Part shown: positions 3,445-58,251 of the stretch, in pieces
Layout of the letters: the number at the start of each line of letters is the position of its first letter
Position numbering within the stretch: position 1 is the first letter of the stretch
NCBI RefSeq assembly: GCF_006345805.1
Contig: NC_043002.1
Coordinates: 76,694,001 to 76,758,000, forward strand
From: Octopus sinensis
Lineage: Eukaryota
Length of the DNA: 64,000 bases
Direction: 5' to 3'
Position numbers and translations under genes: made by a program
Notes under the pieces: generated by a model
Databases searched by the model: none
What the model was told of the DNA's origin: nothing
The model's input: only the letters and a program-made list of their open reading frames with translations

Positions 3445-3915
3445 ATATAGTTTCTGTCTATCTAAATTCGCTGTTAAGGATTGAATCGATCTGAAGTTAT
3501 GTTAAATGCCTTTGCTCAAGGTGCCATACTAAGATCACTTCCTAGCTGTGTGTTTTTGGTTTCAGCCCCACTTTGTAGCACCTTGGGCAAGTGTCTTCTA
3601 TTATAGCCTTATAAATGGGTTTGGTTGCAACTGAAAGAAATCCGTCACACACACGTCTGTCTGTCTGCACATCTGGCTGTGTGAGTAAGTTCGTATTCCC
3701 ATCATCTTTTCGTGGGTTTGTAACCAACAGCATACCTGACAGTGTCGTTTGTTTTCAGTTCTTTATGTAAAACATGTCTAGACAGTTAATTGTTCACTGA
3801 CTTGGGAGATACCATGCTTTGAAAAATGTGGAGGCTACCAACAGGATGGATATCTGCCCATAGAAAATGCTGTCCCAATAAGCTTTATTGCAACCCAAAC
3901 CATAATGGAAAAGTA

Positions 3916-3920
<5 letters not shown>
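3445..3920. mobile_element. Two abutting SINE A/A2 remnants: antisense 3445-3535 and sense 3545-3920
   Basis: tagtttctgtctatctaaat...gctcaaggtgccat, followed by gcaccttgggcaagtgtcttctattatagcc ... catAATGGAAAAGTAGACAT. Confidence 0.68.
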
Positions 3921-4002
<82 letters not shown>

Positions 4003-4182: not shown

Positions 4183-4966
4183 TATATAGTGCAGTGAATA
4201 TATTGTCTCCATTACATAAAAATATTTTGGAATACTAAAGGAGTAAATTTATTCAATAAAATCACCATAGGCTTCAACCACAGCCTCCAGACGACTTCGG
4301 AATCTCCTGCAACTCTTCTGGACCGTTTCTTTATGTTGGTGAACACTGCCATAATCTTTGGTGTGTTACAAGGAGTTTTGTTGGTATCTCGCTCAACTGT
4401 GCCCCACACATAATAATCAAAGAGGTTGTGGTCTGTGGAGTTGAGTGGCCAGATGTTAGGGGTGATGTGGTTGCAGAAATTGTCTGACGGCCACAACTGG
4501 GTTCACCTGCATGTGTGGCATGGTGCAGTCCTGTTGCCAGACATGGGGTTTTCCAGTAGCCACCCCTCTTGACCCAGGACAGCATTACATCTTCCAGGCA
4601 CTTGATGTAGGCTTCCTCTGTGTTGTATCTAATGCCATGTGGAAAGATGGAGCCATAACATCGCCATCACTAGTGACCACACCATGATGTTGACTGAATG
4701 TTTGATTTTTATCACTCTTGGTATATACCCTCTGATAGACACCCAAACACATGTTTGTATTGGAGTTTCCAGTGCAAATGCCAAGCAGTGCAGCATGTCG
4801 TTTCCAAATTTCTGGCAGAGTCAATTGCATCATGGTGCTGTTTTTCTCACAGATGGTACCCAACAGACCCTACTATATTGTGTAGTCAACAAAATCAAAA
4901 ACAAACAATTTGCATGCACAAAATTAAAAATATAAAATGGCAATAATTTACCCATTGCACCCTGTA
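4183..4966 (-). pseudogene. Decayed, internally deleted Tc1/mariner transposon with a DD37D (maT-like) transposase remnant
   Basis: Minus-strand frames, with several frameshifts, give VVTSDGDVM, IFPHG..NTEEAYIKCLEDV, HVWQQD, APCHT, WPLNSTDHNLFDYYVWG. I count 37 residues between the second and third Asp. TIR TA-CAGGGTGCAATGGG at 4951-4966; the other end is degraded. Confidence 0.88.
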
Positions 4967-6359: not shown

Positions 6360-7060
6360 GCTTGTCCTGCATAATACTTGGTGACCCCACCAGTGCTGGT
6401 GCTACAAACATGAAAAAGAAAAAAAGCACCTATTACCCTACACTTTGTAAATAGGTTGGCATTAGGATGGCCATTTGGCTTTGGAAACCATGCCAAAACA
6501 GACAATGGAGACCAACATTGCCCTCATGCTAGTTGAATCCTGTCAAACCATTCTATCTCATGCGAGCATGGAAAACGGATGTCAAAACAATGGTGATGGC
6601 ATCAAGATGGGTGAGTCCGAAACATGTTCAGGAGATTGTTATATCCTCTACTTAATGTTACCAGCTGGTCATTAAAGCTCCATCCCAAAGTGATCACAAG
6701 CAGTTTCCACTGGCATGTAAAAAGCACCATTCAAATGGTGATTGTTACCAGCGTCGCCTTACTGGCACTTGAAAAACAATTGAACGAGGTTGTTGCCAGT
6801 GCCGCTGGACTGCCTCCTGCGCAGGTGGCATGTAAAAAACACCATTCGAGTGTGGTCGTTGCCAGTAGCACCTGAATAGCTCTCGTGCCGGTGGCACGTA
6901 TGAGCACCCACTACACTCTCGGAGTGGTTGGCATTAGGAAGGGCATCCAGCTGTACAAACTCTACCAGATCAGATTGGGGCCTGGCGCAGTCATCTAGTT
7001 TAGCAGTCCTCAGTCAAATCGTCTAACCCATGCTAGCATGGAAGGCGGACATTAAACGAT
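6360..7060 (+). mobile_element. Two tandem 3' ends of an RTE-like LINE or LINE-tailed repeat
   Basis: ggttggcattaggaagggcatccagctgta ... aacccatgctagcatggaaggcggacattaaacgat, an earlier degraded tail at 6455-6600, and internal subrepeats ggtggcatgtaaaaa(g)caccatt. The ggaagggcatccagc motif resembles RTE-clade 3' UTRs (from memory). Confidence 0.7.
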
Positions 7061-7065
7061 ATATA

Positions 7066-7107
<42 letters not shown>

Positions 7108-7364
7108 TATATATATATTAAAGATGTTATAATTCTGGAGTGAATGGTATATGACAGTACAAGAGATGTGGCACAAAGCCAATGATTATGATGGGTCAAT
7201 GATTTCATTTTAAATGGCAACATAAAGTTTTGATGCATTTATATAATGTGTCCACTTCAATTATAGAGAGCAGACGAACAACCAGAATACAACTTATTAC
7301 TTAAGGGTTCTGAAGTAAGAGTTGTAGTCACTTCTCACATTATAATGTGTTGTAGTCATTTGTA

Positions 7365-7660
7365 CTCTCTCTCTCTCTCTCATTCTTGTGTTAACGCATC
7401 TTTGCACATGTAGAGCTATACACACACAGAAACTTTTTTTGTTTGCATCTGCACACATGCAAATATAAATGCAGAAGCAAACATGCATATGCAAACACAC
7501 ACACACATGGATGTGCAAATATGTACACAAGCACACACATACACACTTGCAAGTACATGCACAAGTATATGCATAAGTAAATACAGACACATGCACACAC
7601 ACATGCATATATTACATACACACACACATACATATGTCTCTGTGTGTGTGTATACATACA
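7365..7660. repeat. Degenerate (CT)n/(CA)n/(CATA)n low-complexity tract
   Basis: Direct reading; the source of several spurious ORFs. Confidence 0.85.
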
Positions 7661-9217
7661 AAAATCAAAGTGTGGTGAATGAAGAGGAAACCATTCAAAA
7701 TATAAACGCAAAGTTAAAAAAGAAAAAAAAAAGATAAAGTAAACAAACAAATGTAAAACTTCCATGGAATTTTCTGGTTGTTTGCAGTTTATGTTGGTGC
7801 TTATTTCTCTGTCTGTGTGTCTTAGCAGTAAGCATTGCAGAGGAAAGTGGTGACGGTGGGGTTTAAGAGTTCAAAAAAAAAAAAAAAAATCATTCCTCGT
7901 TCTTACAGGAGCCTGCTTCCTTCTCCTCTTTTAGTATTTCTGTCAAGGAAAACATGATGGTGGATGTTGATGGCGATCTTGAACTAATGTTTATATAACT
8001 TATCTAATCAAACTATATCTTTTTAGAAGCAAATTTAATTTAAAGTAGTGTATGCATTTTGGCAAAGTTCGTTTTTATTATTTTTATTAGTAGTTCTATT
8101 TGTATAAACTCTGTGTATAGATATTTCAATGTAATAAGTTGTGTCATCTCTTTGAGTTTACTTCTGTTATTTGAGTTGTTAAGAAGAATTATTTTTTTTC
8201 CTTCAAGTTCTCTTTTTGTTCTTTTTGTTTTTGTTTTTGTGGAATTTATCTTTGTTGGGTCTTTTTTTTTCCTCTTGTAAACTTTTCCTTCTGCCCCAAT
8301 GTTTTTTTTTTTTGTCATTCCTTTAGAAGTAAAATAAACAAACATACAAATATTCATTTATTGATGAGTCAAAAGTGGAATGAAAACCTCCCCCAAAAGC
8401 AACAAAAAACCTCCTTAAGATATTTGAGCAAATATGTGTGTGTCTGTCTCTGTCTAAGTGTGTACATGTTACTACGTTTGTGTCCATATCTAAATGGGTG
8501 GTGTGTGTATTTATTTTACACACACATAGATGTCTTCCTCAGACAGGTTTAGTTATATTTTATTTGTTTTCATTTAGCTAAAATATTTCTCTCTGCAAAT
8601 AGTTCTTGCCAATCTTAAATGTTGGTCGGTTTGGTGCTTTAATATAATTATTTTTAGACACACACACACGCAAAAACTAAATGCATAGAATGTATTTTAA
8701 TAATTATAAAACCTCGCCCCCCTCCCTTTTTTCTCTCTCTCTTTTGCAAGTTTTCACATTTGATACCTTGTGAAAATAAAACTTTTTTTTTTACATACAT
8801 ACACTTCTTTTGTATAACTTTCCTATTTTAATGTAACTTTAAATAACTATGTTAACCTAAACAATTTTGATGTGTGTTTGTGTGTTTTTGATTATGATAA
8901 AATCGTTTTTACTTATAACACTAATTATTCATATCATCAAAAAAGCAAAATTATTTGTATTTTCAAATTAAGTAGACCTGTAACACATACTTAATAAATT
9001 GTTACTTGCAATCTATGACAAAATTTGAACCCGGGCCTTGAATACAGTGGAGCCTTTGAAAATTAGTATACAGAAAAGGAAGAAAAGCTTTGTTATGGTT
9101 TATGGTATCAGAATAAGGAATCTGGGTAGGGATTATCTACTGAAATAGTGAGTTCTTTAGATTTATGTAATTTGTCAGAAATGAAATAAATTATTTATTA
9201 ATATCATCATCATCATC

Positions 9218-12594: not shown

Positions 12595-12639
12595 TACTAT
12601 GAAATGTCATATGGTTTGAATGTTGAAATGCATAAACAG
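12595..12639 (+). CDS. gro: Groucho/TLE exon, Q domain (YYEMSYGLNVEMHKQ), 45 nt, phase 0-0
   Basis: ttttgcag acceptor and gtaaat donor; peptide nearly identical to the TLE Q domain. Confidence 0.97.
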
Positions 12640-31689: not shown

Positions 31690-31752
31690 ACAGAGATTGC
31701 AAAGCGGTTGAATGCAATCTGTGCCCAAGTTATTCCATTCTTGTCACAGGAG
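31690..31752 (+). CDS. gro: Groucho/TLE exon, Q domain (TEIAKRLNAICAQVIPFLSQE), 63 nt, phase 0-0
   Basis: ttttacag acceptor, gtaaga donor; conserved peptide. Confidence 0.97.
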
Positions 31753-34453: not shown

Positions 34454-34528
34454 CATCAGCAACAGGTTGCAGCTGCTGTAGAACGAGCCAAACAGGTGAC
34501 CATGGCTGAACTGAATGCAATTATAGGG
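34454..34528 (+). CDS. gro: Groucho/TLE exon, end of Q domain (HQQQVAAAVERAKQVTMAELNAIIG), 75 nt, phase 0-0
   Basis: ttttgcag acceptor, gtatgt donor; conserved peptide, also visible inside ORF 34421..34648. Confidence 0.97.
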
Positions 34529-35306: not shown

Positions 35307-35484
35307 CAACAAGTTCAGGCACAGCATCTCCCTCATGCTCACCCACCAGCCATTCCAATACCACCTCATCCTGCTAGTTTACAACCCCCTGGAATTCCAG
35401 TATCAAGTGGATCAGGACTTTTGGCACTTTCAGGCACATTTCCTGGCAACCCACATTTAAGTGGATCTTTAAAAGAAGAGAAGG
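35307..35484 (+). CDS. gro: Groucho/TLE exon, GP domain ([31 protein letters not shown]...SLKEEK), 178 nt, phase 0-1
   Basis: ttttcag acceptor, gtgagt donor; QQxQAQHL start and Gly/Pro-rich content typical of the TLE GP domain. Confidence 0.93.
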
Positions 35485-36298
35485 GTGAGTTTTCAAATAA
35501 CATTTTTTTTTTCTCTTTTAAGCTGTTTAAGAACTTTTTTTTTTAAAGAGCTGTCTAGTTTTCAGTTTGGTGTGAATGCATAGAAAATAATACTAAAAAA
35601 TAAAAAAAGTTAGGATTTAATAAAAGTTTGCTCAAGTTAATTATCACTGAATTGCTATGACACCTAACTTCAAAATTGTCAATATATTATGGCAACAATG
35701 ACTGAAGTTTTGTAAGCCCAAAGATTTCCCAGCAGGAGTTTTACTGCCTGGAGGTTAATCAGTTTGTCACCCTTCCAGTGGACTCATTAAAAGTATTCTT
35801 TCTCTCCAATAACTGCTACCAAAATATATAGCTGAGTAATGAATGACTTTTTTCCCCTTCAAAAGCAATATCCAAAGCATTGTCAAATTTACCTTTAAAG
35901 GGTAGGAGCCAGCAGTGTGCTTATAGCATGAGTGGAGGTGAAGTCTTTCTGGTAATACACGAAGTGATTATTTTGCATCGCTTTATCACTAATCCTGATC
36001 CTATTAAAGAATTAATTTTGAATTCCTAAGTATTCAGTCTAAATAGCATTAAGACTTATTACTGATAATTGCTGACCTTGTTTTAAATCATAATAATGAC
36101 AATGCTCTTGCTCACTCACTCCATTTGCATATTTCTTTCTTTCACCTTTGTGTGGGTAAAGTTTAGAAACTTTTTTTGAAATAGTTAATACTGGTTTGCT
36201 TTCTAAGATATTAAAAATTTAATTTAAAATCTAGACATTGGTATTTAATTCTTTCTTTCTTTCTTTTTTTATCTTTCATATAACCTTTTGGATTATAG

Positions 36299-36309
36299 AA
36301 GAGAAACAC
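36299..36309 (+). CDS. gro: Predicted 11-nt micro-exon (AAGAGAAACAC, completing E-E-K-H), phase 1-0
   Basis: About 45-nt pyrimidine tract ending in tag, perfect gtaagt donor, and exactly the phase change needed between exon 35307-35484 (ends phase 1) and exon 51880-51984 (starts phase 0). Confidence 0.75.
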
Positions 36310-38736
36310 GTAAGTAAACACAGTTCTATTGTTGAAAACAGTGAAAAAGGAAGTAACTTGTAGTGTTTGGATCCGAAGAACTTCATCTCTGCAATGCTGT
36401 GAAATTTTATATTTTTAATCCATACTTACTGGCAAGCATCTTGCCCACTGTGGAAGCCAAGCAAAACATTTAAAAAAAAAAGTGAGAGAGAGAAAAATAA
36501 AACATTTGTGCGTGTGTCTTTTAATGCCAATATTCTTCATAAATATTTGGAACAATCAGGAATAGGTGCATTCTGACTTTGGACACTTCTTATCAAGCAA
36601 TATTTTGTATATAAATTGAACATAACTTTGCTTGATAATTACCTTGGCATAAATAGTGCATCTTTGGGATTCTTCAAAACAGTACTCTCTTGTAATAAAG
36701 GGTTCATCTTTCCAAAAATCATGTCTGTCAATTGTATATTTTCAAACAAAACAAAAAAAATAACAACAGTGAAAGAAACAAACAAAACAAAACTTTTTTT
36801 CTGCCAGAACTTCTCTACAATTCATATCAGTTACTTGCTTTTTACAAAACAAGTAAATCTTTTCACTTAGTTCTTATCTTAAACTTTAAATTATTTATCC
36901 AAAGAGGTTGAAATGGTAAAAGATTACTAAATCTTTCTTTTCAACAAATAAAATTGATAAAGTTTAATAACAACTGTATATAATAACAAAACAAGGATGT
37001 TAGTTTTTCCATATTTTCTCTCTTAAAATTTCCATGTCAACCTCTTTGGTATTATTACAATCTGTGATAATCAAATTTTATACAGTTATTTTTAATGCCT
37101 TAATATTTTTTCTATCATCATGCTTCTCTTAAATTTTGTTTCCCTCCTCCTCTTAATTTAATCATTAATTATTATTAAGTGCACATTTCTAATGCACATT
37201 TTGAACATTCCAGATAGTTATACTTTTTATAAATTTGAAATTCTTGTTTTATAACTTAAATAATCTTGATAGCTATACCTATATATGCCTTTCTATTTTC
37301 CTTGTGTCTTTTTAAACATGAGACAAAATTTGAATGGCTAGATGAAATCTTGAAGTAATTCTGTAATAAATTTGATATTAAAGTAGCCCTTTTCCAATTA
37401 AGAAAGAAGTTCTTGTTGAATTCTGTTGCTTTTACCCCATCACCATTCTGAACAACTTGAAGGAATGTATTGGTCTTGTAGGACCATAGATAAAATTATC
37501 TTTTTTTTTTTAAAAAAAAAAAGCTTATTATTGACCTATTTGAAATTTGGTAGCAATGAAGTGAAATTCAGTTGGTTAGAACAACCTAATTCAAATTGTT
37601 TGATTTTAAGAAAAATTATTTTTTATCTTCTTTTGCTGTTTTATATTCACTTACATATGTATGTGCACTTGTGCGCATGTGTTAGTTTTCCAACTAGCTT
37701 AACTTAGTGTCCAATTACTGAATGCAATGTCTATGAAAAAGACTGGTCCTTTAATTTCTTCACAATAAGCTCAATTTAACCAGATTTATCATAAAGTTGT
37801 CATCAAACTTTGCTATCAAATAGTTATGTTACACAACCACTTGACAGTCACCTGCTTTTAGTTTATCTTTTAACCACGTGAATTCTAGTTTTACATTTGG
37901 TGTTTTTGATTCTTATATTATTTTATCTTTACTTCAAACCCAACATTTAGTGTGTGTGGTCTTCTTTTTCTCCTAACGGCGTCCAAAGTTTCTTTAATCG
38001 TGATCATTACATTTTCGGGAATAAGAATTCTAAGTCAGAACCCTGTGTTTCAAACAGGATTAAATACTGGAAATTAGATATTCTACTTTCACACTAGTGT
38101 TATGCAGTACACTCACATCTTCACTGTTTCATACAGTCAGGCACCAGCTTATGTTAATTTATTTAAGTTAAACAAGCCTTACATAACTGAAATTGCAGTT
38201 TCATTCTCTCAATTGACTCTTACATGTCAAGGGTTTGATAATATTAGTTGACTGATTGCTTTCAAAGCCTGCTGCTATGTACAGTAGACTACTTGAACGA
38301 AATCAGTTTGCAAGAGGTAATATCCTTGTTTCTTATATAAATTAACGTATATGACTACACACCTTAAACATAAAGTTGTATTGCGTACTTATGTCTTTTT
38401 CTTGTGCTACACAATACAAACAAAAACTGTATTTCTTCATTCTTTTACTGGTTTCAACCATTAGAATATGGCTCTGCCTTCAAATGTCTAGCCAGTCATA
38501 TTAATCTAATACTTCTTTCAGGCTGTTACTTCTTTGTCAATCTATGGTAGTCGAGTAGATAAGCATATATGTATTTGAATGTGTATGTGCGATGGGTCTC
38601 TACACAGTTTCTGCCCTCCAAATTCCACAAGTCTCTGGTAAAAGACATTTGCCAAGGTGTTGATGTGTGGCGATGAGCCTAGAATTGATGTAAAGCAAAC
38701 TTCTTACCATAAAGCCCTGATGATGCTCCAGATGAG

Positions 38737-38797
<61 letters not shown>

Positions 38798-38824
38798 CCA
38801 CATTACTCCATAAGGATCATAGGG

Positions 38825-39000
38825 CCAATTTCTCTGGTTTATACACCCCTTCCTGGATAGGATACCAGCTCATCACAGGATTACACTAGAGCAATGTGAA
38901 ATGTTTTGCTGAAGAACACAATGCATCACCCAGTCTAGGAATCAAAACCACAATCTTATGATTATGAGTCCAACACCCTAACCATTAAGCCATGTGCTTC
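38825..39000 (-). mobile_element. SINE family C copy, antisense
   Basis: ttttgctgaagaacacaatgc...ggaatcaaaaccacaatc...caacaccctaaccattaagccatgtgcttc. Confidence 0.8.
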
Positions 39001-39666
39001 TACTATATATATATATATAATGAACTAAATGGAAACACTGTAAAGTTTTAAATCTGTTAAGGAATTGTATTAATTTAGAGTTAATCATTAGCTCTGGTGT
39101 CAGTAGCATTGACTCAACAGGCCAAGTTATCTATGAGAAAGAATGCTGATTTTCCCTAAGAAAGCAGTGTACTTCGAAGCAAGAAGGATTATCTTGTTTG
39201 GATATAAGGAAATAGCTACGAGAGATTACTTATGTATACTATATGAACTAGTACTAGCGCTCCAATATATAGAGGTATCTATATATGTTTGTTCATTTAA
39301 CATCTGCATTTTCACTGGTATGGAATGGGTGAGGACTATCTAAGGCAGCATTTTCATTTTTTTCTACTGAATACCTATCCTGTTACCAATTCTTATGTTT
39401 TTCAAGTGAAGAGCAACTAGTTGAAATGTCAACAATGAATGTAAACATCACCATATGGCTCAACTTGTGACAAGCAAAAGATGTGGAATTTCAACATGTG
39501 TATATACACACACACACACACACAATGGGCTTCCCTGTAGTTACCAACTTGTCCCACTCAATACTTTAGTTGGTCCATGCTACTGATACCAGAGCGCTAA
39601 TGATTAACTCTAAATTAATACAGATTCTTAACAGATTTAAAACTTTATGTTGTTTCCATTTAGTTC

Positions 39667-39709
<43 letters not shown>

Positions 39710-39776
39710 GAAGCACATGGCTTAGTGGTTAGGGTGTTGGACTCATGATTATAAGATTGTGGTTTTGATTCCTAGA
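39710..39776 (+). mobile_element. SINE family C tRNA-like head only (67 nt)
   Basis: gaagcacatggcttagtggttagggtgttggactc...ggttttgattcctaga; 64/67 identical to the reverse complement of 38934-39000. Confidence 0.82.
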
Positions 39777-41431
39777 TGCTCAGAGTGGGACTGAACTTGA
39801 AACTGGCTGCGAAGCAAACTTCTTAACGATGGGTGCCATTTTTGCACCTATCTGGACTTGAGTCAAGTCAATTGCAACTCCTGTTGCAATTGACTTAAGA
39901 TATATTTCACTCCAAAGAGATTATCATAGCAACCTATCTGTAGATACGTATATGTTTGTGTGAAGCCAATGTATGATAAATATTATCTCATAGCGATAAG
40001 CATTACATTCAGTATTAAATCAATTTTTAAAATGCTTACATATTATACACAAAGAACATTTCAAATTAAAATTGAAGCTGAGTATTAAAACTAATGTATA
40101 TTTTATTGAGTTGATCAGTTAAGGTAATTTGTAAACTTCAATTAGTGAATGGATTGGTACAAACAATTCAAACTCTTCCTTGATTGACTTTTACATTTAT
40201 TTCACCTGTTATATGCTTCAGCATTTTGGATTGATTATAAACTAATCTCTTTCAAAATGCACAAGCCAAAGAAATTACTATCATCACCTTCATGTGGTCA
40301 TGTTGGTTTTGGAATACTGCTAGATTAGAGTGCTCAGTTTGGTACCTAATTCTTCTGTATTTAAATGTTATCACTTTGGATATACGAAATGGAGATCAGT
40401 TTTTGATGAAATTTTATCATCTCTGATTGAGCAGGCTTATATCAGAAGGCATTTTCATTCAAGTACAGTATAAGTAGGACTTCATTATCCAATGTGCCCC
40501 CGCTCTTTTTTTTTTTAAAGACAGTTGTATTATTCTTTGAAGGGAAATTTGCTGCTATTTCTAGCAATTTGAGTGAGTTAAATCACACCTGCTCTCATTA
40601 ACAATAAACATTCCATTTTGCAAGAAAACTCCATCACATTATTAGACCCGTATCCCACGGACTTATTTCTGTTTTTTTTTTTTTTTTTTTTTTTTGTCTA
40701 AAATTCCCTACTTATTAGTTTTTAATCACCTCTTTAGCAGATTTTACTATTTAAGATAAATACAAATCTATAAATTGCTTTTTTTATTTACAAATATTTT
40801 CTTTTATTCAGATTTTCGTGTTTTATTGTTGCTTCATTTTCCCCGAGTTAAAAAGTTGTACACGAATAACATTCTTTTTAACCATATTAACTCTACTGGT
40901 ATTGGCTACAAACAAAGGAAACAAATTAACAGTTTATAAATCTATCAAATAGCTACCCGCATTTCAAATTATTTAGTCCATTGCTGCATTTTATTGCTTG
41001 ATCTGTAAACTTATCAAACAGTTATATCCGATAGTATTATTTCGAGATTTCTGGGCAGTATATGTAGTCTGTTTTAAGAGGTCAATATCAAAGTGATGTC
41101 ATGTATTATATCCATTTATATGATGTATATAAAGTATTAATTTTGATGTTTATAATGTAATAAACATCAATAACTTTTAATTTACTCTCTCTTTTTTTTT
41201 ATTATTAATATCTTGTTCACTAGCTCAACCCATTTGGTTACCCCCCCCCCTTTTTTTTTTAAAGGAAAAGTAAGCATTACAAGTATCCTGATGACTGCTA
41301 TTCATCATTAATAGATTGCTTATTACTGCTGTTAGAGACCCTCTTTCCATTAGAGGATGATAATGATTTTGGTAAATTTTTAGTTACCGAAAAAATTCCT
41401 AGAATATAACTTAGAATTTATTATCACTGAA

Positions 41432-41669
41432 GTTCAGTTTAAACATTTAAACTGTCCATATCCGGCCCAAATATTCGGCCCAAATATTCTACTTGTTTTA
41501 TGTTGAAACTGGCTTGATCCAGCCTCTCATACCTACCCTTCAATGTCATTCTAAAAATAACCACATCATCAAAATCTGTGAAGGTACAAGGTACTATATG
41601 ATTAATTTTAAAAAATGCAGATAAATAAGTATTATGTTTGATAAATTGATCTAAATGCTAAAGGGTTAA
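41432..41669 (+). mobile_element. piggyBac-type MITE family D copy with an internal 13-bp tandem duplication
   Basis: Ends aatgctaaagggttaa; shared interior; cggcccaaatatt x2 at 41463-41488; left TIR degraded. Confidence 0.8.
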
Positions 41670-44600
41670 GTCATCAAACTAGATACATTATTGTAACCAT
41701 TTCTATGTTCTACTGTCTTGGTTAGTTCTGGTTCCTCTGCTCGTATAGTAATATATAAAAACTGGATTCTGTTTTTTTTTTTCTATTTGAATAGGTGTTG
41801 TATAGTCAACACTTGGTAAATGCTTATATTTATTTATTTATTTACTTGATTTATTTACTTGGAGCTATTAGTCATATTATTCAGGTTATCATAATGCAAC
41901 AGGAAGACGTTGAGTAAATTAGTTTAGATTATAATCTCGGAACTCTTTGCTTTGCTGACATGTAGTATTTTATTTACAATGACCATATCTCTCACTTGTG
42001 TCACCCTATGTTTGCTGTTATGAAGACCATCTCCATTTATTTATTTTTCAATGTTATTTCTATCTCCTAGGCACTTAAACCTGATGCACCTCACTTTGTA
42101 CACAACTGACAGCTTTGTGAACACTGACTACTTGTTAGAATCACTTTCCAAACCATTCCCTTCTCTACCTTATTTAGTATGTGTGCGCAAGGCTTTGGTT
42201 CGGCTTACAAGCAAATAGATGTTTCTTACTATTCCAGTTTACAAAGCTAGTAGCGTCATCTCATTAAACACTGAAAAGTCACTTCAACAATTGCCAGCGT
42301 TTATTCTACACAGTTGGAGACTCCAAACAAACAGAATGCCATCTGTCCTATAATGTTTGTCTATCCATTTTCTCCTTCTCTGTTAGTTTTGTTACACAGT
42401 CTAAATTACTTGCTCTCATCAATTTTTCTAAACTTTTTCTAGTCATAATAGTGTTCTTCATCTCATAAATTCTGTCCTTCGCTTTTGTCTACATTTTCTC
42501 TGCTTGTTCAGATGGCAATTTTTTTGTTTCTCTGCTGTTTTATCTTTTCTTTATCCAATAAATCTGTATTCTTAGCTCTTAACTCTTTTAGTTTTATTTG
42601 GTCATTTGTTTTGCAATTTCTGAACAGGTTTTTATTTTTATCTTTAAAAGTGCATTTTTTTTTTTTAATGTTAGAATCATTTCTTTACACTATACACACT
42701 GGCTATTTTATTCTTTGAAATAATCATATATTTTTTTTGTCTTATTTTTATATTGATATTTGTTATTTTAGGTCATCCTATTGTTCATTATCAGTTTACT
42801 ATTTTGTTTTGACTATTTTCATTGGTAACATCTAAACATTATCAACACCTTTGACCCATCTTAATTGGATTACATTGTTGAAATAATTACTAATCGCAAG
42901 TTATTAGTATTTTCAGTGATGTCTTTCAGTGGTGTCTATGATGATAGGATCCATAAAGAACACCAAGCTTTTTACCCTCAATCCCCTTTGCTGTTCAGTT
43001 TGTCATCATTATTACTCATTTACAGCTTCACTTCCTTACTGATGCTTCCATCCCATGACATCTGTTAGTGCCATTTAGTATATACGTTTGTTAGCATCAT
43101 ATAGTATAACTAACATTTGGTAGTATCAGTGTTTCAATATTATTTCACTTACACCTACTTAGCCATGTTGTTAAAGCAATTATCAGGAACATTAGATGTT
43201 AGGCTGTTATCTTCAGGTAATCTCTGTTGGTAGCACCTGACTAATGCACTGAATCAGTGACTGAGCAACTGCTGAGATCTTAGAATTACCCTCCTTGTTT
43301 CACCATTAAATTTGGTATATAAACAGATTTGATAACTGGAGGTACCAAACCCAAAGTAGTTGTATCAACATTACTACAATATTTTTTTCTTTCTGAGCAG
43401 CATTGCATAAACCAAAAATGTTTCTTTACTAGATATAGAAGCCTTCTATTTTAAAAGTAAAAATGGGGAAATGGCATTTATTACTAGTCATAAGAGATTT
43501 GCAATCTAGCTAAAGTGAAATGGTTTTAATATGGTGTGTAAGTAAAGTTAATTCCAGAAATATGTTGTTTTGATTAAAATCTTTTTGTGGTCATATTTGT
43601 AATGAAATACACTCTCTGTTGTTTCAATTAATTTTGAAAATAATCAAAAATTTGTAGGGAAGTAGAAAAATAATAAACTGGTGTTTGGAACATAAAAATT
43701 TCACATAGGATTAAGATGAAATGTTTTAAGCTAAATCCAAATACTTCTACAATGAAAGGCTTCTATCGTTAGATGCAGAGGTGGTATTGAAAGGGTTAAC
43801 CAAAAGAAACCAATCTTGCTCTATAGAATATTAAGAGGATTAAAAGAGCAGAGGATTAGAAGATGAAATAAACTTAATTTTATTTCAATAGAAATTTACT
43901 AAAAAGAAATATTTTTGTTTTTACTTAATTGGTTTATATAGAATCAAGTTCAATCCTAACTAGCTGCTAACATTTGACTTATTTTTTTCTTTTAAATTAA
44001 ATCTGATTTTAGAGCTTAACCTCTCCTTTTATTTGTTTGTTGACTTTAAAAAAAAAAAAATTTATATTATGTCATTCCAAGTTTTTTCTGGAAATAGTGG
44101 GAAGTCTTTTTGAAAAGAAGACACATTTGTTAATCTATTTTAAGTACCTCACTGTTTATCCTGATTTTAAAATTTCTTTGTAATTTTATTCCTTCTATAA
44201 GATTTAGGGCTCTTACAAAGATCCCTATAATAATGTATTAGGCATTCAACACTCAAACAATTGGGAGAATTTTCATGTGATGGTTTGCATGCTTAAAAAA
44301 GCAGGTTCAAAAAAACAAATCTTTTCTTGATCTGCTTATTGACAAAAATAGTTAGAGTGAAATTGGATGTAATAGAAGAAAAAAAGGGGGGGGGGAATAT
44401 AGTGTGTATTACTTTGTATCTGATTTTATTTTGCAGTAGTTTTAATTCTTTGCTCTCAAGATTTTTTTGTGGTGGTGGTGGTGGTAGATCAGTGAGGAGA
44501 GAGAGAGAGATCAACTTTGTTTACTTTCTTGATATTCCTAAGATGAATTTAAATGTCAAGAAAAGTATCAGTCACAAATTTCCAAAAAATTTAGAGTGAT

Positions 44601-46733
44601 GCTTGTGTGCTCTGTAAATTTTTTCTTAAAATTATATCCAATCTTTTTTATTTAAAGTTCTTGTTAATGTTGATTGAGGTTGCTGTACCTGTTGCGTTTA
44701 AACACAGTTTCCTGGAATTTCAAATAAAAATATATTTTATTCATAGACTCTATCCTCGTGTTTGTTTAGCTTTAAGAAACAGTTATTGGTATTTTTTAAA
44801 CTATATCTTCTATATATTTTATATTTTCGTTTTTTTTTGTTTTTTTTTATATCTCCACAAACGAAAATAGCCGTAGGAGTGGAGAATCTGAATTTCTTTA
44901 GATACCAATGTCAGTCAAAACCACACTGCATTCTGTAGAATGTTCCCAAGATGTCAACTTCATTGATTTTTGTTCAATACCTGCACAAGTTCCATTTGAA
45001 GTAAAAATTACTTTCATATTAGTAGACAGGACAGTTTATTGTTTTTACATTCTGCTATAAATTGGGTTGAAATTATATATAAATTCTTATGTTGATGTAA
45101 ATAGTTATGATTTTTTATTTTTTCTTCTTCATTAAACAAATTTTTGTTTATCTATACTTTGTAAACAAAGGTTAGCCTTCTCTTTTTGTACTTTTCATAT
45201 GCCGAAAAGTTTGTCATAAACCTTTCAATTTTAAAATTTAAAGTTAGTTCTAATGAAACTTTTCTGTTATACAAAAATCTTAATTCCATTTCTCTTATAT
45301 TTTCCTTATAAAATTTAATGTAAAGAATTTTACCTAATTTCTACAAAAAATAGGTGTGCATATGCATGCACTTTTTTTGTTTTATTTTTTTCATCCCCTC
45401 ATTTAAATCAACCTACTACATCCTGAAATATTTCACACAGGTCTTAGTGCAAGTTGAAATTTCTTCTATATATATTCTGATTCATAGAATAGTTGTCTAT
45501 TGGTAATCCCTCAAATGTTTTTATATTTTTTGTCCCTAATTTTCTTGTGTTTGAAGGGTTTTTGCCTCCAGCAGCTTAATGAAAAAAATAACTTAAAGTT
45601 AACTTGGTTTGGGTGTGTGTGTGGGGGGGATCATTAACTGTCCATATATCCATCCTAGGTCAGGTTAGCTATATAGAGATAATTTATAGCACTGGGATCT
45701 GTTTCTGATAAACATTTTTTTTTAATATCTGCTTGTGGAAAACAAAATGTTTAATACAGATGTGAAGTGAGGTCATTGGATTTTCATCAAATTTGTCTAC
45801 AAAAAGAATTATAAAATTATTAAAAATCAAATAAAAATGAAAGGCCTTCATTGGAAGTCTGGAAAATCTGTTTAACTTTTATTTATATTTACACAATGCT
45901 GTTAATTACAAGTGGGATAAATATTGATATTCCCTCCTTTTTAGAAAGAAAACCAATTGTGTTTTTGACAATTCCTGCTTGGCATTGTTTACTTGTACTT
46001 TAAAAAAAAATATTTTATGAATAAAACTGCAAATTATACCATGATTAATGGCCATATTCCTGTGTGAGTTTCTTTTGACTATTGATATATATATATAACT
46101 TCCTCTTTTTTTCTGGTTATCTCTTTTGTTGGTATCATTAGAATTTAACAATGCTACCGACAAGATGTTTTTTTTCTCTCTATTTTTTTAATCATTCCTC
46201 ACAGCTTGGTGAATAGTGTAGGTTTGATTTTTTTTTCCCCCTCCCATTACATGATCAGCAATAGACCTATTGAAACTGGGTATTTTTTGTTCTACCACAG
46301 TTTAAACAAACACTGTTTGATATCTTCTCATTTGATATACATAACTGACATACAAGTTAATAGAATTAATGCAACTTTCATAACTTGTCTTCCAAAATCT
46401 CCTTTGCGCTTCTTTACCAAAAAAAATAAGAAAAAAAGTTTTTTCAGTCCAATTGTGCTCTGCTCTTTGTCTTTTCTTTGGGCAATTTCCAAGTTTTAAA
46501 AATATCCATGGGGCAATTTATCTCTTCATTTTCAGTATTGATTTCTTTTGGATGCTTTTATTCCTTTGTGTGTGGTTTAAAAAACATTTTTTTTTAATTG
46601 ATTTATATCCTGACTCTAATAGATATTGCTGTGATCTGAATTCTGTATTTTTCCCCACCTAAATCCTATTTGGTGTTCAGATATGATCTGACATTTGCCT
46701 TGTAATCGCCATTTAACATAGATTATTGGAAAT

Positions 46734-46787
46734 GTTGCTTCCAATCATAATTCTGCACAAGTTGCTTCCAATCATAATTCTGCACAA
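46734..46787. repeat. Perfect 27-bp tandem duplication (GTTGCTTCCAATCATAATTCTGCACAA x2)
   Basis: Direct reading. Confidence 0.95.
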
Positions 46788-49700
46788 TTTAATTCTTTCC
46801 AAATTTGTTTTGGGGACATAATACAGTGTATAACCAACCATACTTGAGAATGTTTTCCATGAAATACAGACTTCCCAACTGTTTTTTTATGTTCTGTTTT
46901 TCTTTGTTATTATTATGTTTCTCAATAGTAGAAGTTTTAGGATGATCCATTAACACTTTAGCTGTGCATTATGTCTTCCATCTGTCAAAATCAAGAAATG
47001 TCCTTGTTATTTATATCTGAAAGAAACAAAAGAATTTTAAGATTATTTTTTTGAGATTAAGCCTTGATATGAGTTTTCTTTTCCAGATTTAAACAAATCT
47101 GTTTCAAAGATAAATTTATTAGGTTTTACAGAAACAATAATATATTTTCTCAATAATTAGTCTTCAAAACACTTATGTGAACAAGTATTTGATTATGTAG
47201 TGAGGTTGTACAGAAAATCAGTGCTTTGACAGCAATGAATTAACCAACTGTTTCTGGATATTGGCATTAATCCAGTTGCATGTCTGCAATAGTCTTTGTC
47301 TCTGAGACAGACCCTCTTTTACTGTTGTTACATTACTTAGCATAGTATCTCTCTCTCTCTCTCACACACACACTCACACACACTCTCTCTTTATTCAGGT
47401 GATTAATTTCAATGTCCTCAGAGAAGGAGAATATAATTTTAGGTGAATAATACCATGACCTCAAGAACCTACTTTATCTGTCGCCTTTTGAAATTTACAA
47501 CCTAAATCTAGACTCCCTGCATGTCCTCGACTTCTGTTAACATTTTCTCCTTGCCAAATTCACTCATGAAATTTCCATATCTTTATTAATTAACTGTAAC
47601 TCTATACATTTGAAACCTGACATTGTCTCATGTCACCTTTTGGTTTAAGAATGGCAGGCATTTGTAAGATATAATTCCAAACAATTAATTTGCTATTACT
47701 TGTGACAGTTTCCTGTTTCACTCTTATACTTTATAGCTTATTCCTCAACTGGTTACTTATTTCTGGTTACAGCAAAGACATCTCCACACAAACTCACCAT
47801 TTCACTCCCACCCCTATTTTCTTCCTTTTCCTCCTCTTACCTCTTGCATTGCTCTCTTCAAAAATTATCTACCAATGAAAATGTCATTGCTAATTTCTCA
47901 TCTTGCTTAACTTTTCTACATCAAAGCCTCTAGCTGGCTCTGGATGATTCCAAGATATCTGAATCCCTCGTAAAAATACCAGCCACCACATTTTATATCT
48001 GTCTGCCTTATTTGCATCATATAAATTTATGGTTATAAATAGCCATCATACTAGCTTATAGAGGAATTATACTGTGAAAGAGTTCTCAGACCCATTGGGA
48101 CATAAAAGTTTATTTTTTGTACTTTCCCTGATATATGCCATTAATATCATTTAGTTTGTTGAGAGTGAAGTGTAATAATAAAAAAAGACTTGGTATATGA
48201 AACAACTTGACATTGAACCTAGATTGTAATTTTAATAGCTCTCCTCCTTCTGTACAGGTTTGTTGTGGCAGTAGGCTGTATTTAGATGTCACTGCTGCTT
48301 GTATGATATTTGTTCTTGAGAAGTTGTACAGGCTTTTAATTCAACTGACTCTATTGGGGAAAATTCTTAATATATTTATTTTATTAATAGGAGTGACTAG
48401 ATAGTTTAAATAATTTTCCTTTTTCACAATGCTTTTAAAGATTTTCTTTTTTAGTTTTGTTATTTTCTTTACTCGGGAGCTTTTTGTTTTTGCTTTTTCT
48501 TTTTGTATTGTTTCATTTGTTTTAACAAACGAGATAGATGTAGATAGAAAGATTGATGAATTGAATGTTTGTTTGGTCTGAATATATTGACTGTGTTAAC
48601 AAAGATTCCCTTCTTAGCCAGTTGCTTGAATTGGTGTCTTCTCCAGCAACTGAATTACATTAAGTAGCAAGAATTCAGTGTGAAAATCAAACACTGGGGC
48701 TCACAGGAGTGTTATTACAAGATATTAGATGTTTGCCCCTGAAGTGCAAAGCTAATATTTGCTACAATGTTGGTGTGGTATGATGAGGTAAGATGTGTAG
48801 ACTCTTTCTCTGCCTCTCCTCTCCTCAACTCTTTCGTCCTTGCTCCCCTTCTTTAAGCTTAAATTGAAACCTTCATCTCCTCTTACACCCACAAATATAC
48901 ATACACACACACACACCTTCTCTCTTTCTCTCTCTCTCTAAATGAATGGAAAGAGAGCAGATCTGTGCAAACAGTCATTGGTAGTAGTACTTTTGTTAAT
49001 GTTTGCTGATGGCCACTGGAATAGGATTAGACAGCCGTCTCCTTTGAGAAAAGATTTCTTTGCAGCTTCAACCATTGAGCTTGTTTACTTCACCCACTTC
49101 CATGTCCCTTTTGAGCTGTGTATTAGTTTCTGGATAACCAAAAGATGGACACATGAATCACATAGACACACACACACTGAAACATATTTACTCTCTCTCG
49201 TTCACATCTGTTATTGACTGATGTTGCACCTATCATGACAATTGCAACTTTTCTTAACATCTTCTCTGAATTGATGTTATTTCTTGTCACAGAACAAGCT
49301 CCCAGTTAACTATTAATACAAGATTAGTTAGGGTGGGATGGTGTATACTGTGTATTCTAAAATATTTCTTTTTGTTGTTGCATTTACTTTCTATATATAT
49401 ATATATATTTTTAACTTGCCTTAGTTATTGAGTAATTCTATTCCATTGTTGACTAACCAGAAGACTATCAAACTTGATTTATTATTCATGCACAGGCTTA
49501 ACATGCTTATGTACACCTATCAACTATATTGCTGTCCCTACCACCATGAGTCCCCATAAGTGGAGGAGAGTGAACGGGAGTTGTGCACATACAAATTAAT
49601 CTGCAAGCGTTGGCTGTTGTGATAATTTCCTGCCAAACTTTTTTTAACAATAACCAAGGTTTTGAGTTGCTGTATATGATACAAACTAAAGCAGAAAACT

Positions 49701-51879
49701 TTGATACTAGATTTCTTAATATTCTCAAATTTTTACATCCACACAAATTATGCTTATTATCTTATATATATATATACACACACAAGCCTATTTGAACAAA
49801 TGGTTCCACATCAACTTTTTTTAAAAAATTTACTTTATTCCAACCAATGTTGTAAGAATTGAAATTTGACTATTTTGTGGTTTTTAAATAGAATTTTTTT
49901 TTTTTTACATTTCTTACTGCAATTATTATTATTATTATTATTGCACAAATATATCCTTTCATAAAATCTGCCTTGCTAAATTGTCAAGAATTTATATGGG
50001 AGTGTGTGTGTGTGTGATTCATAACATTAGAGTATAGATTTTAATTCATGTCTATATATACATACAATTACTGTGATCAAATTCTTGAAAACCACTTTTT
50101 TTTTTATTAATCTTAAATTCAATCTTAATAGTTCCATTTATGTTACCTTTAGAAGATAAAAATATTCTTAAAAGTGTGTCCTAGCCCTTCATTCACCATG
50201 TTCATTTCCTAATGGCTCAAATTATTATTATTATTATTTAAGTAAAATGCAACTTTTTTTTAAAATTATACTCAATTCTTTTTAATGGTTTTTTTTTTAA
50301 TTTCCCTTTCCCCTAATTCTGTTTTTCAAATTTTACATACAAATACTACATTAGAGATTGCCACCACCCACCCTGCTCCATACCTTCAGTTCCCAATCAC
50401 CAACTCTTTATTAGTGATGAAAACATTTTCACTATTAGTGATTCTCCCCCTCCTCCTCTCCCTCCATTCACTTTTGCTACCAAAGAAGGTCAAGAGGTAA
50501 GGTTAGGCTAAGAGTAGGGGCGATAGGAAGATAGACTGAAGTAGGAGTTGCCTGTTAAGGAGTTTTTTCTTTTCCTTTTTCTGTTTTAGATTGTTGCAGC
50601 TTCGCATTCTCTTGTTGAAGTTCTCTGTCTCTCTCTCCCTCCTTACTCATTTCTTCCTCTCCTTGTCCTTCTTCACACAAAAGCTGTAGCCAGCTGAACA
50701 AATACATTTTTTACTTTCAATCAGTTCAGGATCTCCATCTTCTCAAACTCAAAACTATCGGTCTCCTTTCTCCAATTTATATTCTATTTAAGTCTCACTA
50801 TCTCACACCCACCCACTAACCTTGCTTGTTTTTTTTCTTTTTTTCTTCTTCTTCCTTAAGATATTGATTTATCATATTGCTGCAAGCAAAGAATGTTAAT
50901 CTCTTGAGAAAATGGTTTTTAGTGAAGGGAAGCAAGAGAGCGAGATCAAAAACAAAACAAAAACAAAAACCTCTCTCTTTTTCTCTCTCTCTCTCTTCTC
51001 CCCATCCATTTAGTTCTCAATAATTTCCTGTTTAAAACCTCTCGGCTATTCTAGACTTTCTTATTGTTCCTTACTCCATTTACTGATAAAAAGCACACTC
51101 TGAACGAGAGGTGGTTGGGAGCGGAGACGGAGCTGAGAAATCAGTGTATCCCAAGTTTTTACATCATGATTCTCTGGAAAAACCCTTCATTTGGAAATAT
51201 TCTTAAGCCACTCAAAAAGCTCAACACAATCTCTACAAGCATCATTCATTCTCTATATTGGTATTTGAATAACATTGATCTCCCTTCTAACTTTTTATCA
51301 CCCCACCAAATATAAATGAACAAGTTATTGAAAAATTTACTAACAGAGATTGTCTTTTTTCTTTTTCTTTTTTTCTTGTTTTTAAACGTTCCCATTTGTA
51401 AAATGAATATTTTCATAATATTACTTAACTCCTTAACTACATTATTAGTAATTATCAAAATACGACTCTACTTCTTTCCTCATAAATATCATTTAGTAAC
51501 ATTAGTTCTACAATACTGCAATTTTCTCCCCGCCAAAAATAAATAATAGTAATAATAATTAAAGAAATAAACAATATAGATGTGAATTATGAATGAATTT
51601 TTGCTTTATTTTTGTATTCTATACTTGTTCTTCCATTCAATTTCTCCTGTGATGTCTGAAACTGAATTGGATTCTGATTTGTTTTTTGTTTTTTTTTCCT
51701 ATACCTATATGTATTTTTTTTTTCCTTGCTTGGTTTCCACCCAGTGGGTATCGTTCTACAAGTGAAGTAGTTTTAAGTTAAATGACCCTCAGCATGCAAC
51801 CTAGCAAATGCTATATATCTTTAGCATTGTTTCCAAAGATCTTCAATATGTTTTTTTTTCTTTCTTTTCTTTTCTGTAG

Positions 51880-51984
51880 AGAGCATCCGCATCACCAGCT
51901 GATCGTGACAAGTATAGACATCGAAGTAGGTCCCCTGAAGTAAATGACAGCTCAAAAAAGCGAAGAGCAGAAGAGAAACCCAAT
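51880..51984 (+). CDS. gro: Groucho/TLE exon, CcN region with NLS-like KKRR (RASASPADRDKYRHRSRSPEVNDSSKKRRAEEKPN), 105 nt, phase 0-0
   Basis: Long pyrimidine tract plus ctgtag acceptor, gtaagt donor; basic cluster corresponds to TLE SKKxKxEEK. Confidence 0.92.
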
Positions 51985-52436: not shown

Positions 52437-52487
52437 GATAGTGATGGCGAGAAGAGTGACCAAGATCTCGTAGTTGATGTAGCAGAA
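52437..52487 (+). CDS. gro: Groucho/TLE exon, CcN CK2-site motif (DSDGEKSDQDLVVDVAE), 51 nt, phase 0-0
   Basis: ggttag acceptor, gtgagt donor; hallmark DSDGEKSD..LVVDV motif. Confidence 0.96.
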
Positions 52488-54089: not shown

Positions 54090-54227
54090 GACACATCACC
54101 TGTAAATGGAGATTTATCACCCAGAGAAAAAGTTATGAAAGATGCTCATAAAAAAGATGACAGAAGTAGTCCACGAAGCGATTCATCATCACATGCAAGC
54201 ACAGCTTCATCTTCAAAACATAAAGAG
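54090..54227 (+). CDS. gro: Groucho/TLE exon, CcN/SP region (DTSPVNGDLSPREKVMKD...SSSKHKE), 138 nt, phase 0-0
   Basis: ctgtctcag acceptor, gtatgt donor; open frame; SPRE and S-rich content aligns with the TLE SP domain. Confidence 0.92.
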
Positions 54228-54698: not shown

Positions 54699-54810
54699 AA
54701 TGACAAATCTGGAACACCTGTATCAAAGTCAATAACCCCTACCAGTTCCGGCAGTGTCACACCCGGCCCCTCCAGTGGGCTAAAACCTATAGCAAAAGCA
54801 CCTCCTTTAA
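54699..54810 (+). CDS. gro: Groucho/TLE exon, SP domain (NDKSGTPVSKSITPT...KAPPL), 112 nt, phase 0-1
   Basis: cattacag acceptor, gtaagt donor; corresponds to TLE NxKSxTPVSKSxTPT. Confidence 0.93.
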
Positions 54811-54910: not shown

Positions 54911-55050
54911 AATTTCCATATGTTTCAGGCGCGTACCCATTCATGCCACATGCTAGTCACGCAATTTCAGCTGAACTCAGTCCTGGAGCTTACAGTAATA
55001 ACATGCTTCATAATAGTATATCATCCAATAGTTATTCCAGAGGACCAATG
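54911..55050 (+). CDS. gro: Groucho/TLE exon, SP domain (KFPYVSGAYPFMPHASH...YSRGPM), phase 1-0; the 5' boundary could instead be 54875 or 54929
   Basis: gtaagt donor at 55051; ELSPGAY and YSRGPM correspond to TLE LTSPGAY and YGRSPM. Three in-frame acceptors make the start ambiguous. Confidence 0.85.
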
Positions 55051-57859: not shown

Positions 57860-57924
57860 GGGGGATTTGATCCACACGGCCACATGAGAATGCCATCTTT
57901 TAGTGGATTTCAAAGTGGGAAACC
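57860..57924 (+). CDS. gro: Groucho/TLE exon (GGFDPHGHMRMPSFSGFQSGKP), 65 nt, phase 0-2
   Basis: ttttcag acceptor, gtaagt donor; GFDPHxHMR and GKP motifs. Confidence 0.95.
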
Positions 57925-58031
57925 GTAAGTACACAAAATTCTCATATTTTCTCTCCACCCTACCTTTGTGAGTTAAAAATGTTGGTATTGAGAAGAATCT
58001 ATACAGGAAGTGTAAACTGAGTTCATTGAAC

Positions 58032-58032
<1 letters not shown>

Positions 58033-58087
<55 letters not shown>

Positions 58088-58187
58088 ATATATATATATA
58101 TAATATATATATATATATGCATACATACATACATACACACACACACACATACATACATACATACATACATACATACATACATACATA
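58033..58187. repeat. Compound (TA)n/(GT)n/(CATA)n microsatellite in a 428-nt intron
   Basis: Direct reading. Confidence 0.95.
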
Positions 58188-58251
58188 CTGTAGTCTTCAA
58201 TAATACAGTCTAAATGACAAATGTACTGGAATTCAATTTGAACAACTTTAA

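Follow-up and report, generated by a model that had tools for sequence, protein, structure and literature searches.

Positions 36299-36309 of the window, by which we mean the whole 64-kb stretch of Octopus sinensis DNA analysed here, very probably hold a true coding micro-exon belonging to a mollusc Groucho/TLE gene, and sequence comparison suggests that this exon is orthologous to a known ancient TLE micro-exon and has become shorter in this lineage. The sequence, the reading frames, the homology and the exon in the gene models and mRNA of relatives were observed directly, and we infer that the exon is included, and constitutively so, in Octopus sinensis mRNA. In the mechanism that we propose, removal of an intron of 814 nt would join the GP donor at 35484 (phase 1) to the TAG acceptor ending at 36298, the 11 nt would be kept in the mRNA, and removal of a second intron, 15.6 kb long, would join the strong GTAAGT donor at 36310 to the acceptor at 51880 (phase 0). 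In the protein, the exon would place four charged residues, EEKH, in the linker that separates the GP region from the CcN region, and the chief consequence of its inclusion would be that the CcN, SP, and WD40 parts stay in frame.

The gene lies on the + strand and occupies most of the 64-kb window (33% G+C), with its first coding exons and its last WD40 exons falling outside. Its proposed identity as groucho/TLE is supported by a Pfam TLE_N match to the N-terminal part (E=1.6e-35) and by CcN, SP, and WD40 exons that match TLE proteins at 80-100% identity when taken together and at 95-100% for the WD40 exons, and the domains follow the order of Groucho/TLE: the Q domain (TLE_N), then GP, CcN, SP, and a C-terminal WD40 propeller (Table 1). 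Long microsatellites of the TA/CA type and tracts of low complexity also occur in the introns of the window (~3900-4000, 7030-7240, 7400-7700, 58030-58200), and overlapping open frames with the motif ...LFDYYVWGTVER... are found at 4215-4870 on the minus strand; a guess that ~4215-4870 holds a transposase remnant was dropped, two pieces having been tried with no Pfam match.

Table 1. Features of the Groucho/TLE gene in the window, and the corresponding small exons in other animals (a slash marks an exon boundary; locus handles are explained in the text)
Feature	Positions	Strand	Remark
Q-domain exons	12595-12639, 31690-31752, 34454-34528	+	mapped
GP-domain exon, 178 nt, phase 0 to 1, end ...AAA GAA GAG AAG G/GTGAGT	35307..35484	+	same ending in relatives
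Upstream intron, 814 nt	35485..36298	+	
Branch-site-like TTTAAT (36244-36249) and pure 22-nt pyrimidine run (36249-36270)	36244..36270	+	
Acceptor AG of the candidate micro-exon (TATAG/)	36297..36298	+	
Candidate micro-exon AAGAGAAACAC, 11 nt, phase 1 to 0, E-E-K-H with the carried G	36299..36309	+	sequence, frames, homology
Possible 8-nt variant via the second AG of tandem TAG/AAG, frame-restoring, E-K-H	36302..36309	+	
Donor of the candidate micro-exon, GTAAGTA	36310..36316	+	GTRAGTA invariant in four aligned species
Downstream intron, 15,570 nt	36310..51879	+	
Tandem AGs of the CcN acceptor (T-AG-AG-AG): first gives start 51880, PWM +9.0; third gives start 51884, PWM -0.9	51878..51883	+	
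First CcN exon, 105 nt, phase 0 to 0: RASASPADRDKYRHRSRSPEVNDSSKKRRAEEKPN	51880..51984	+	
Second CcN exon: DSDGEKSDQDLVVDVAE	52437..52487	+	
SP exons	54090-54227, 54699-54810, 54929-55050, 57860-57924	+	
WD40 exon starts	58353, ~60186, ~60512, 61746, ~62638	+	
Candidula 17-nt exon, tttcag/GAGCTGATGAGAAGCAT/gtgagt, between phase-1 GP and phase-0 CcN exons	L005 29700-29716		
Plakobranchus 17-nt exon, tcag/CCAACGATGAAAAACAC/gtgagt, ANDEKH	L001 39388-39404		
ENA contig 17-nt exon, gcag/GTCACGATGACAGACAT/gtaagt, GHDDRH, 678 nt past the phase-1 GP exon	L004 1007-1023		
Bird TLE3 17-nt exon, gaag/AGCGAGACTCAAGTGCA/gtaagt, ERDSSA	L006 7661-7677		
23-nt micro-exon of the second bird TLE paralogue	L002 6924-6946		

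The junctions of the gene are phase-consistent except for one, that from the GP exon (phase 1) to the CcN exon (phase 0). The start of the latter at 51880 is preceded by TTTTCTGTAG (tgtag/) and reads AGA GCA TCC (RASASPADRDKYRHRSRSP...) in phase 0, and because the two phases are 1 and 0, a further exon whose length is 2 mod 3 nt is required between 35484 and 51880. The 11-mer, flanked by ...GGATTATAG before and GTAAGTAAA after, has the make-up of a coding micro-exon, tatag/AAGAGAAACAC/gtaagt, with an AG acceptor, a GT donor, and a length well below the limit of ~30 nt. When 35484, the 11-mer, and 51880 are joined, the reading is ...SLKEEK-EEKH-RASASP... without a stop (RASASPADRDKY after EEKH), the computed junction being ...GAAGAGAAGG-AAGAGAAACAC-AGAGCATCC... 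(full string ATCTTTAAAAGAAGAGAAGGAAGAGAAACACAGAGCATCCGCATCACCAGC), whereas 35484 joined directly to 51880 (computed string ...GAAGAGAAGGAGAGCATCCGCATC...) reads ...KEEKESIRITS and then stops at the TGA of 51900-51902, 82 nt ahead of the next junction. The initial annotation had claimed both the phase mismatch and the restoration of the frame by the 11-mer, and the exon sequences agree with it on both; its account of the splice signals stands for the TTTAAT, the TAG, and the GTAAGT, but the pyrimidine tract does not end in the TAG as it had stated, ~20 nt of mixed sequence (ATAACCTTTTGGATTATAG) lying between the two. The 62 nt upstream of the acceptor AG are devoid of any AG.

Each of the two acceptors has its AGs in tandem, with TAGAGAG before the CcN exon (51877-51883) and TAGAAG before the micro-exon (36296-36301), and together they offer alternative starts of 2, 3 or 4 nt, two combinations being in frame. 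At the micro-exon, the tandem TAG/AAG could give a minor 8-nt form encoding EKH, with ...GAAGAGAAGGAGAAACACAGAGCATCC... as the computed inclusion junction. At the CcN exon, the tandem arrangement bears on the earlier description of the 11-mer as frame-essential, which is correct for the canonical acceptor at 51880 but not for the third AG of TAGAGAG, since a start at 51884 keeps the frame too. The existence of these tandem AGs therefore allows a reading in which the 11-mer is unused and the main mRNA joins 35484 in frame to 51884 (computed string ...GAAGAGAAGGCATCCGCATCACC...), so that the peptide would be KEEK-ASASP (KEEKASASP) in place of KEEKEEKHRASASP. We consider this highly unlikely, because the acceptor at 51884 is a GAG/, with the least favoured base at -3, and follows a strong TAG at a distance of 4 nt (-0.9 versus +9.0 on a position weight matrix, PWM), because the CcN exon of Candidula offers no equivalent in-frame shortcut within its first 12 nt, and because an unused 11-mer would not retain 17/18 matches to a gastropod exon-plus-donor pattern over >500 million years.

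Splice signals alone do not single the micro-exon out. Intron candidates were defined as AG..GT pairs that restore the frame without a stop, and were scored by a crude generic splice PWM; the 16.4-kb intron holds 725 such candidates, and the micro-exon ranks ~17 among them (acceptor -3.6, donor +4.6). This low rank is not counter-evidence, because the true 17-nt exon of bird TLE3 ranks only 14/475 on the same PWM (the Candidula 17-nt exon ranks 1/550), and the generic PWM was dropped as a discriminator; since splice signals alone do not discriminate, independent evidence was sought in other species. A further reading is that one or more other exons in the 16.4-kb intron restore the frame, for example 41265-41269, 50390-50496 or 50486-50496, all of which stand above the 11-mer on the crude PWM, and the extra segments around GEKH in a bivalve-like transcript described below do point to additional cassette exons in some molluscs. 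We find this scarcely credible, given that these three candidates bear no resemblance to any relative's sequence, that tblastn of the bivalve insert against the intron returned nothing, and that the bird example shows PWM rank to be a poor guide. As to chance, a frame-restoring candidate ending in EKH was present in 8/300 dinucleotide shuffles of the intron, and in none of them with an equally good donor.

The evidence from other species comes principally from molluscs. The layout of a phase-1 exon, a micro-exon, and a phase-0 exon is found in two gastropods, Candidula unifasciata (L005) and Plakobranchus ocellatus (L001), and in one invertebrate ENA contig (L004; ERZ24900295 ctg6540l, 1.23 Mb), with the 17-nt exon in all three sharing position, phases, and the donor GTRAGTA with the exon of the window. 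The three relatives' exons read ..GATGA-A--CAY/GTRAGTA and encode ..DEKH or ..DDRH, and it is their 3' nine bases, encoding (E/D)(K/R)H, that correspond to the window, where the exon lacks 6 nt (two codons) at the 5' end and the downstream intron is much longer (15.6 kb versus 2-9 kb). In Plakobranchus, the phase-1 end of the GP exon reads GAT AAG G/GTGAGT, and the phase-0 start of the CcN exon reads cag/AGA AGA TCA GCA TCA CC. The contig L004 is labelled a metagenome assembly but is plainly animal and contains the middle region of TLE complete with its introns; the CcN exons of L004 and of the window share 83% identity. The phase-1 GP ending AAG/AAA-G/GTGAG is common to Plakobranchus, Candidula, L004, birds, and a further invertebrate contig, L003, at the end of which an 8-nt AAGGAATG candidate was rejected, being without similarity to the other micro-exons.

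In an alignment of four genomic regions, the conserved block is GA-GA-A--CAY GTRAGTA. The pattern ATGAVARRCAYGTRAGTA, built only from Candidula, Plakobranchus, and L004, with the window excluded, and allowing at most one mismatch, has a single match in the whole window on both strands, at 36299-36316 with 1 mismatch over its 18 nt, as against 0/100 dinucleotide-shuffled windows and 1/3000 shuffled introns. From the conserved block and the pattern match it follows that the exon of the window can be read as the relatives' exon with its acceptor shifted 6 nt (two codons) downstream, and once other species are compared, the micro-exon exceeds what chance would give. Sequence similarity in this comparison is to the lophotrochozoan exons and does not extend to the vertebrate ones.

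At the protein level, a search with the 35-aa CcN exon gave two matches. One, the annotated protein CAG5114671.1 of Candidula unifasciata (P0242), reads ALKEDK-GADEKH-RRSASPLDRDKYRHRS; its gene model (L005 19330-27800) joins ...ELNAIIG to VSGLQPPIPP..., the first part of the GP exon being missing through either an alternative acceptor or an annotation error. The other is a bivalve-like transcript ORF (P0243; 774 aa, from a 3478-nt Logan contig) reading ...KDEK-GSPTGAPGVRRNMYPWSEG-GEKH-ISDRDH...PSST-RSSASP..., and because it is a transcript ORF, EKH is present in a real mRNA. The peptide of the micro-exon is thus seen as GADEKH in an annotated protein and as GGEKH in a transcript ORF. In P0243 (residues ~195-250), GEKH is flanked by the extra segments GSPTGAPGVRRNMYPWSEG and ISDRDHMTVVRWLNGQDAKNSDISPRIRPSST, whose lengths fit cassette exons of phases 1-1 and 0-0, and in molluscs the GP-CcN linker may be particularly prone to alternative splicing; the insert specific to this bivalve-like sequence had no tblastn match in the window's intron, and no further cassette exons were detected by homology in the downstream intron 36310..51879. 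Arthropod proteins read ...PEERL-RSSVSP and ...SSEDRH... at the junction. A protein-database search with the peptide of GP, micro-exon, and CcN gave no match, the protein-database searches that returned many TLEs had no cephalopod TLE among them, metagenomes scanned for the spliced junction EKH-R-x-SASP yielded 26 matches, all at chance level and none of them TLE, and nothing specific was found in the literature on a TLE/Groucho micro-exon.

In vertebrates the same place in the gene is also held by a tiny exon. The GP exon of Prunella (bird) TLE3 (L006) ends GAC CAC AGA G/GTGAGA and its CcN exon begins acag/AAT AAT TCC GTG TCC CCC in phase 0, with the 17-nt exon of Table 1 between them, so that the 17-nt phase 1-to-0 micro-exon that the initial annotation had given for vertebrates is directly visible in bird DNA. 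The human TLE4 isoform P0122 has the shared sequence as far as ...DHQRDRDSIK, beyond which it differs, as would be expected if DRDSIK came from a 17-nt exon. A comparison of intron phases with TLE orthologues, proposed earlier as a check, gives the same phases in Candidula, Plakobranchus, L004, bird TLE3, and the second bird paralogue (L002), and the architecture of phase 1, 17 nt, and phase 0 is common to gastropods and vertebrates. The 17-nt exon of vertebrate TLE1/3/4 and the exon of the window share their flanking exons, the phases 1 to 0, and the GP ending G/GTGAG, and in both cases the next exon begins at an (S/R)-S-(V/A)-SP motif; the vertebrate genes differ in carrying a KDEKxHH motif inside the GP exon and in the length of the micro-exon, 17 nt as against 11 nt in the window. 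The suggestion that position and phase were kept while length was not is accordingly borne out for the octopus gene, which has 11 nt where the others have 17 nt. No sequence similarity is recognisable between the vertebrate and mollusc micro-exons, and because of this the cross-phylum homology rests on gene architecture; the homology of the window's exon with the vertebrate 17-nt exon is less certain.

The region upstream of these exons also has a characteristic organization. A distal pyrimidine tract and an AG-free zone of 51-117 nt are found in the window (36235-36298), in the orthologues L001, L004, and L006, and before the 23-nt exon of the paralogue L002, while Candidula has an AG-free zone of 46 nt without a long pyrimidine run; the distal tract and the long AG-free zone suggest that the branch point lies far from the acceptor. 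Like the SRRM4/eMIC neural micro-exons, the exon of the window is at most 27 nt long and is preceded by an extended pyrimidine tract. Those exons, however, are usually frame-preserving and tissue-regulated through a UGC near the acceptor, whereas the exon of the window is 2 mod 3 in length, is required to make the full-length protein, and is without a TGC within 80 nt of its upstream side, and we do not assign it to the SRRM4/eMIC type.

The frameshift on skipping raises the possibility that the micro-exon is real but acts as a regulated switch, in which skipping would lead through the KEEKESIRITS reading to the stop at 51900-51902, 82 nt ahead of the next junction, and hence to an NMD target or to a short Q+GP (AES/Grg1-S-like) Groucho. 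There is precedent for such a product in Grg1-S, a short Q+GP Groucho that is documented to arise through alternative splicing (PMC3698143), and the short Grouchos Grg1-S, AES/Grg5, and sea-urchin AES197 have the Q+GP make-up predicted here on loss of the micro-exon (PMC3698143), although AES is a separate gene, unlike the predicted skipped product of the window gene. The grass carp TLE3a isoform X1 (P0129, 231 aa) reads ...KDEKNHHDLEHR and then EQLHLSIRQSAHNQRETPW..., resembling the CcN exon out of frame after GP, and on the basis of this protein its tail looks like that expected from a skipped 17-nt micro-exon. Transcripts running beyond the GP donor are also seen in other animals (P0121, P0128/L003), but the short forms known here are produced by intron read-through or alternative terminal exons, as distinct from demonstrated micro-exon skipping, and the window has no UGC (SRRM4/eMIC-type) motif from the pyrimidine tract to the AG. 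On this balance we regard a regulated switch as plausible by analogy but unlikely.

The read-through ORFs deserve a description of their own. In L003 (JGI contig Ga0187728_1089055, 419-1063 onward), an invertebrate ORF of 214 aa runs past the GP donor into the intron and comprises Q+GP only, and P0121, a vertebrate TLE1-like ORF in a cluster of 38 member sequences, has the same structure; such ORFs may reflect intron retention or naturally occurring short isoforms of Groucho. In a broader evolutionary form of the switch, which we put forward as rather doubtful, the micro-exon would be a bilaterian-ancestral 17-nt exon (>550 million years), its regulated skipping or read-through of the preceding intron would be an ancient and widespread route to AES-like Grouchos or to down-tuning of TLE by NMD, and the octopus lineage would keep an 11-nt version of the switch. 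Our preferred reading remains that of a coding micro-exon whose main effect would be to hold the downstream parts of the protein in frame.

An exon of 11 nt is easily missed by aligners and gene predictors, and a TLE model that lacks it would be split in two, frameshifted, or pushed onto a poor acceptor. The initial annotation had suspected that automated annotation misses this exon, and in other genomes that is what is found, with the models of Plakobranchus, Prunella TLE3, Allacma, Crotalus, and Tupaia breaking at this junction (proteins P0125, P0007, P0045, P0036, P0029). In Plakobranchus, the annotation divides TLE into two genes at the micro-exon junction (L001 36393-41656), the ATG of the downstream annotated gene lying 13 nt upstream of the 17-nt exon, so that, read from this ATG, the first coding exon of that gene would end at the micro-exon donor. 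In Allacma, Prunella TLE3, Crotalus TLE4, and Tupaia TLE4, the model begins at the CcN exon or shortly upstream of it, and some of these models include residues derived from the intron.

As the shortened counterpart of a 17-nt exon in snails, sea slugs, and vertebrates, the exon of the window amounts to a useful annotation fix and not to a new type of biology. Its practical value lies in annotation, where the pattern ..GAYGARAARCAY/GTRAGTA between phase-1 GP and phase-0 CcN exons could help to correct the TLE models of lophotrochozoans, and its biological novelty is modest, the view of Groucho function being left as it is unless regulated skipping is demonstrated. For the gene family, the finding would mean that a tiny exon whose length is not a multiple of three has kept its position and phases in animals as far apart as molluscs and vertebrates, at 17 nt in most lineages and at 11 nt here.
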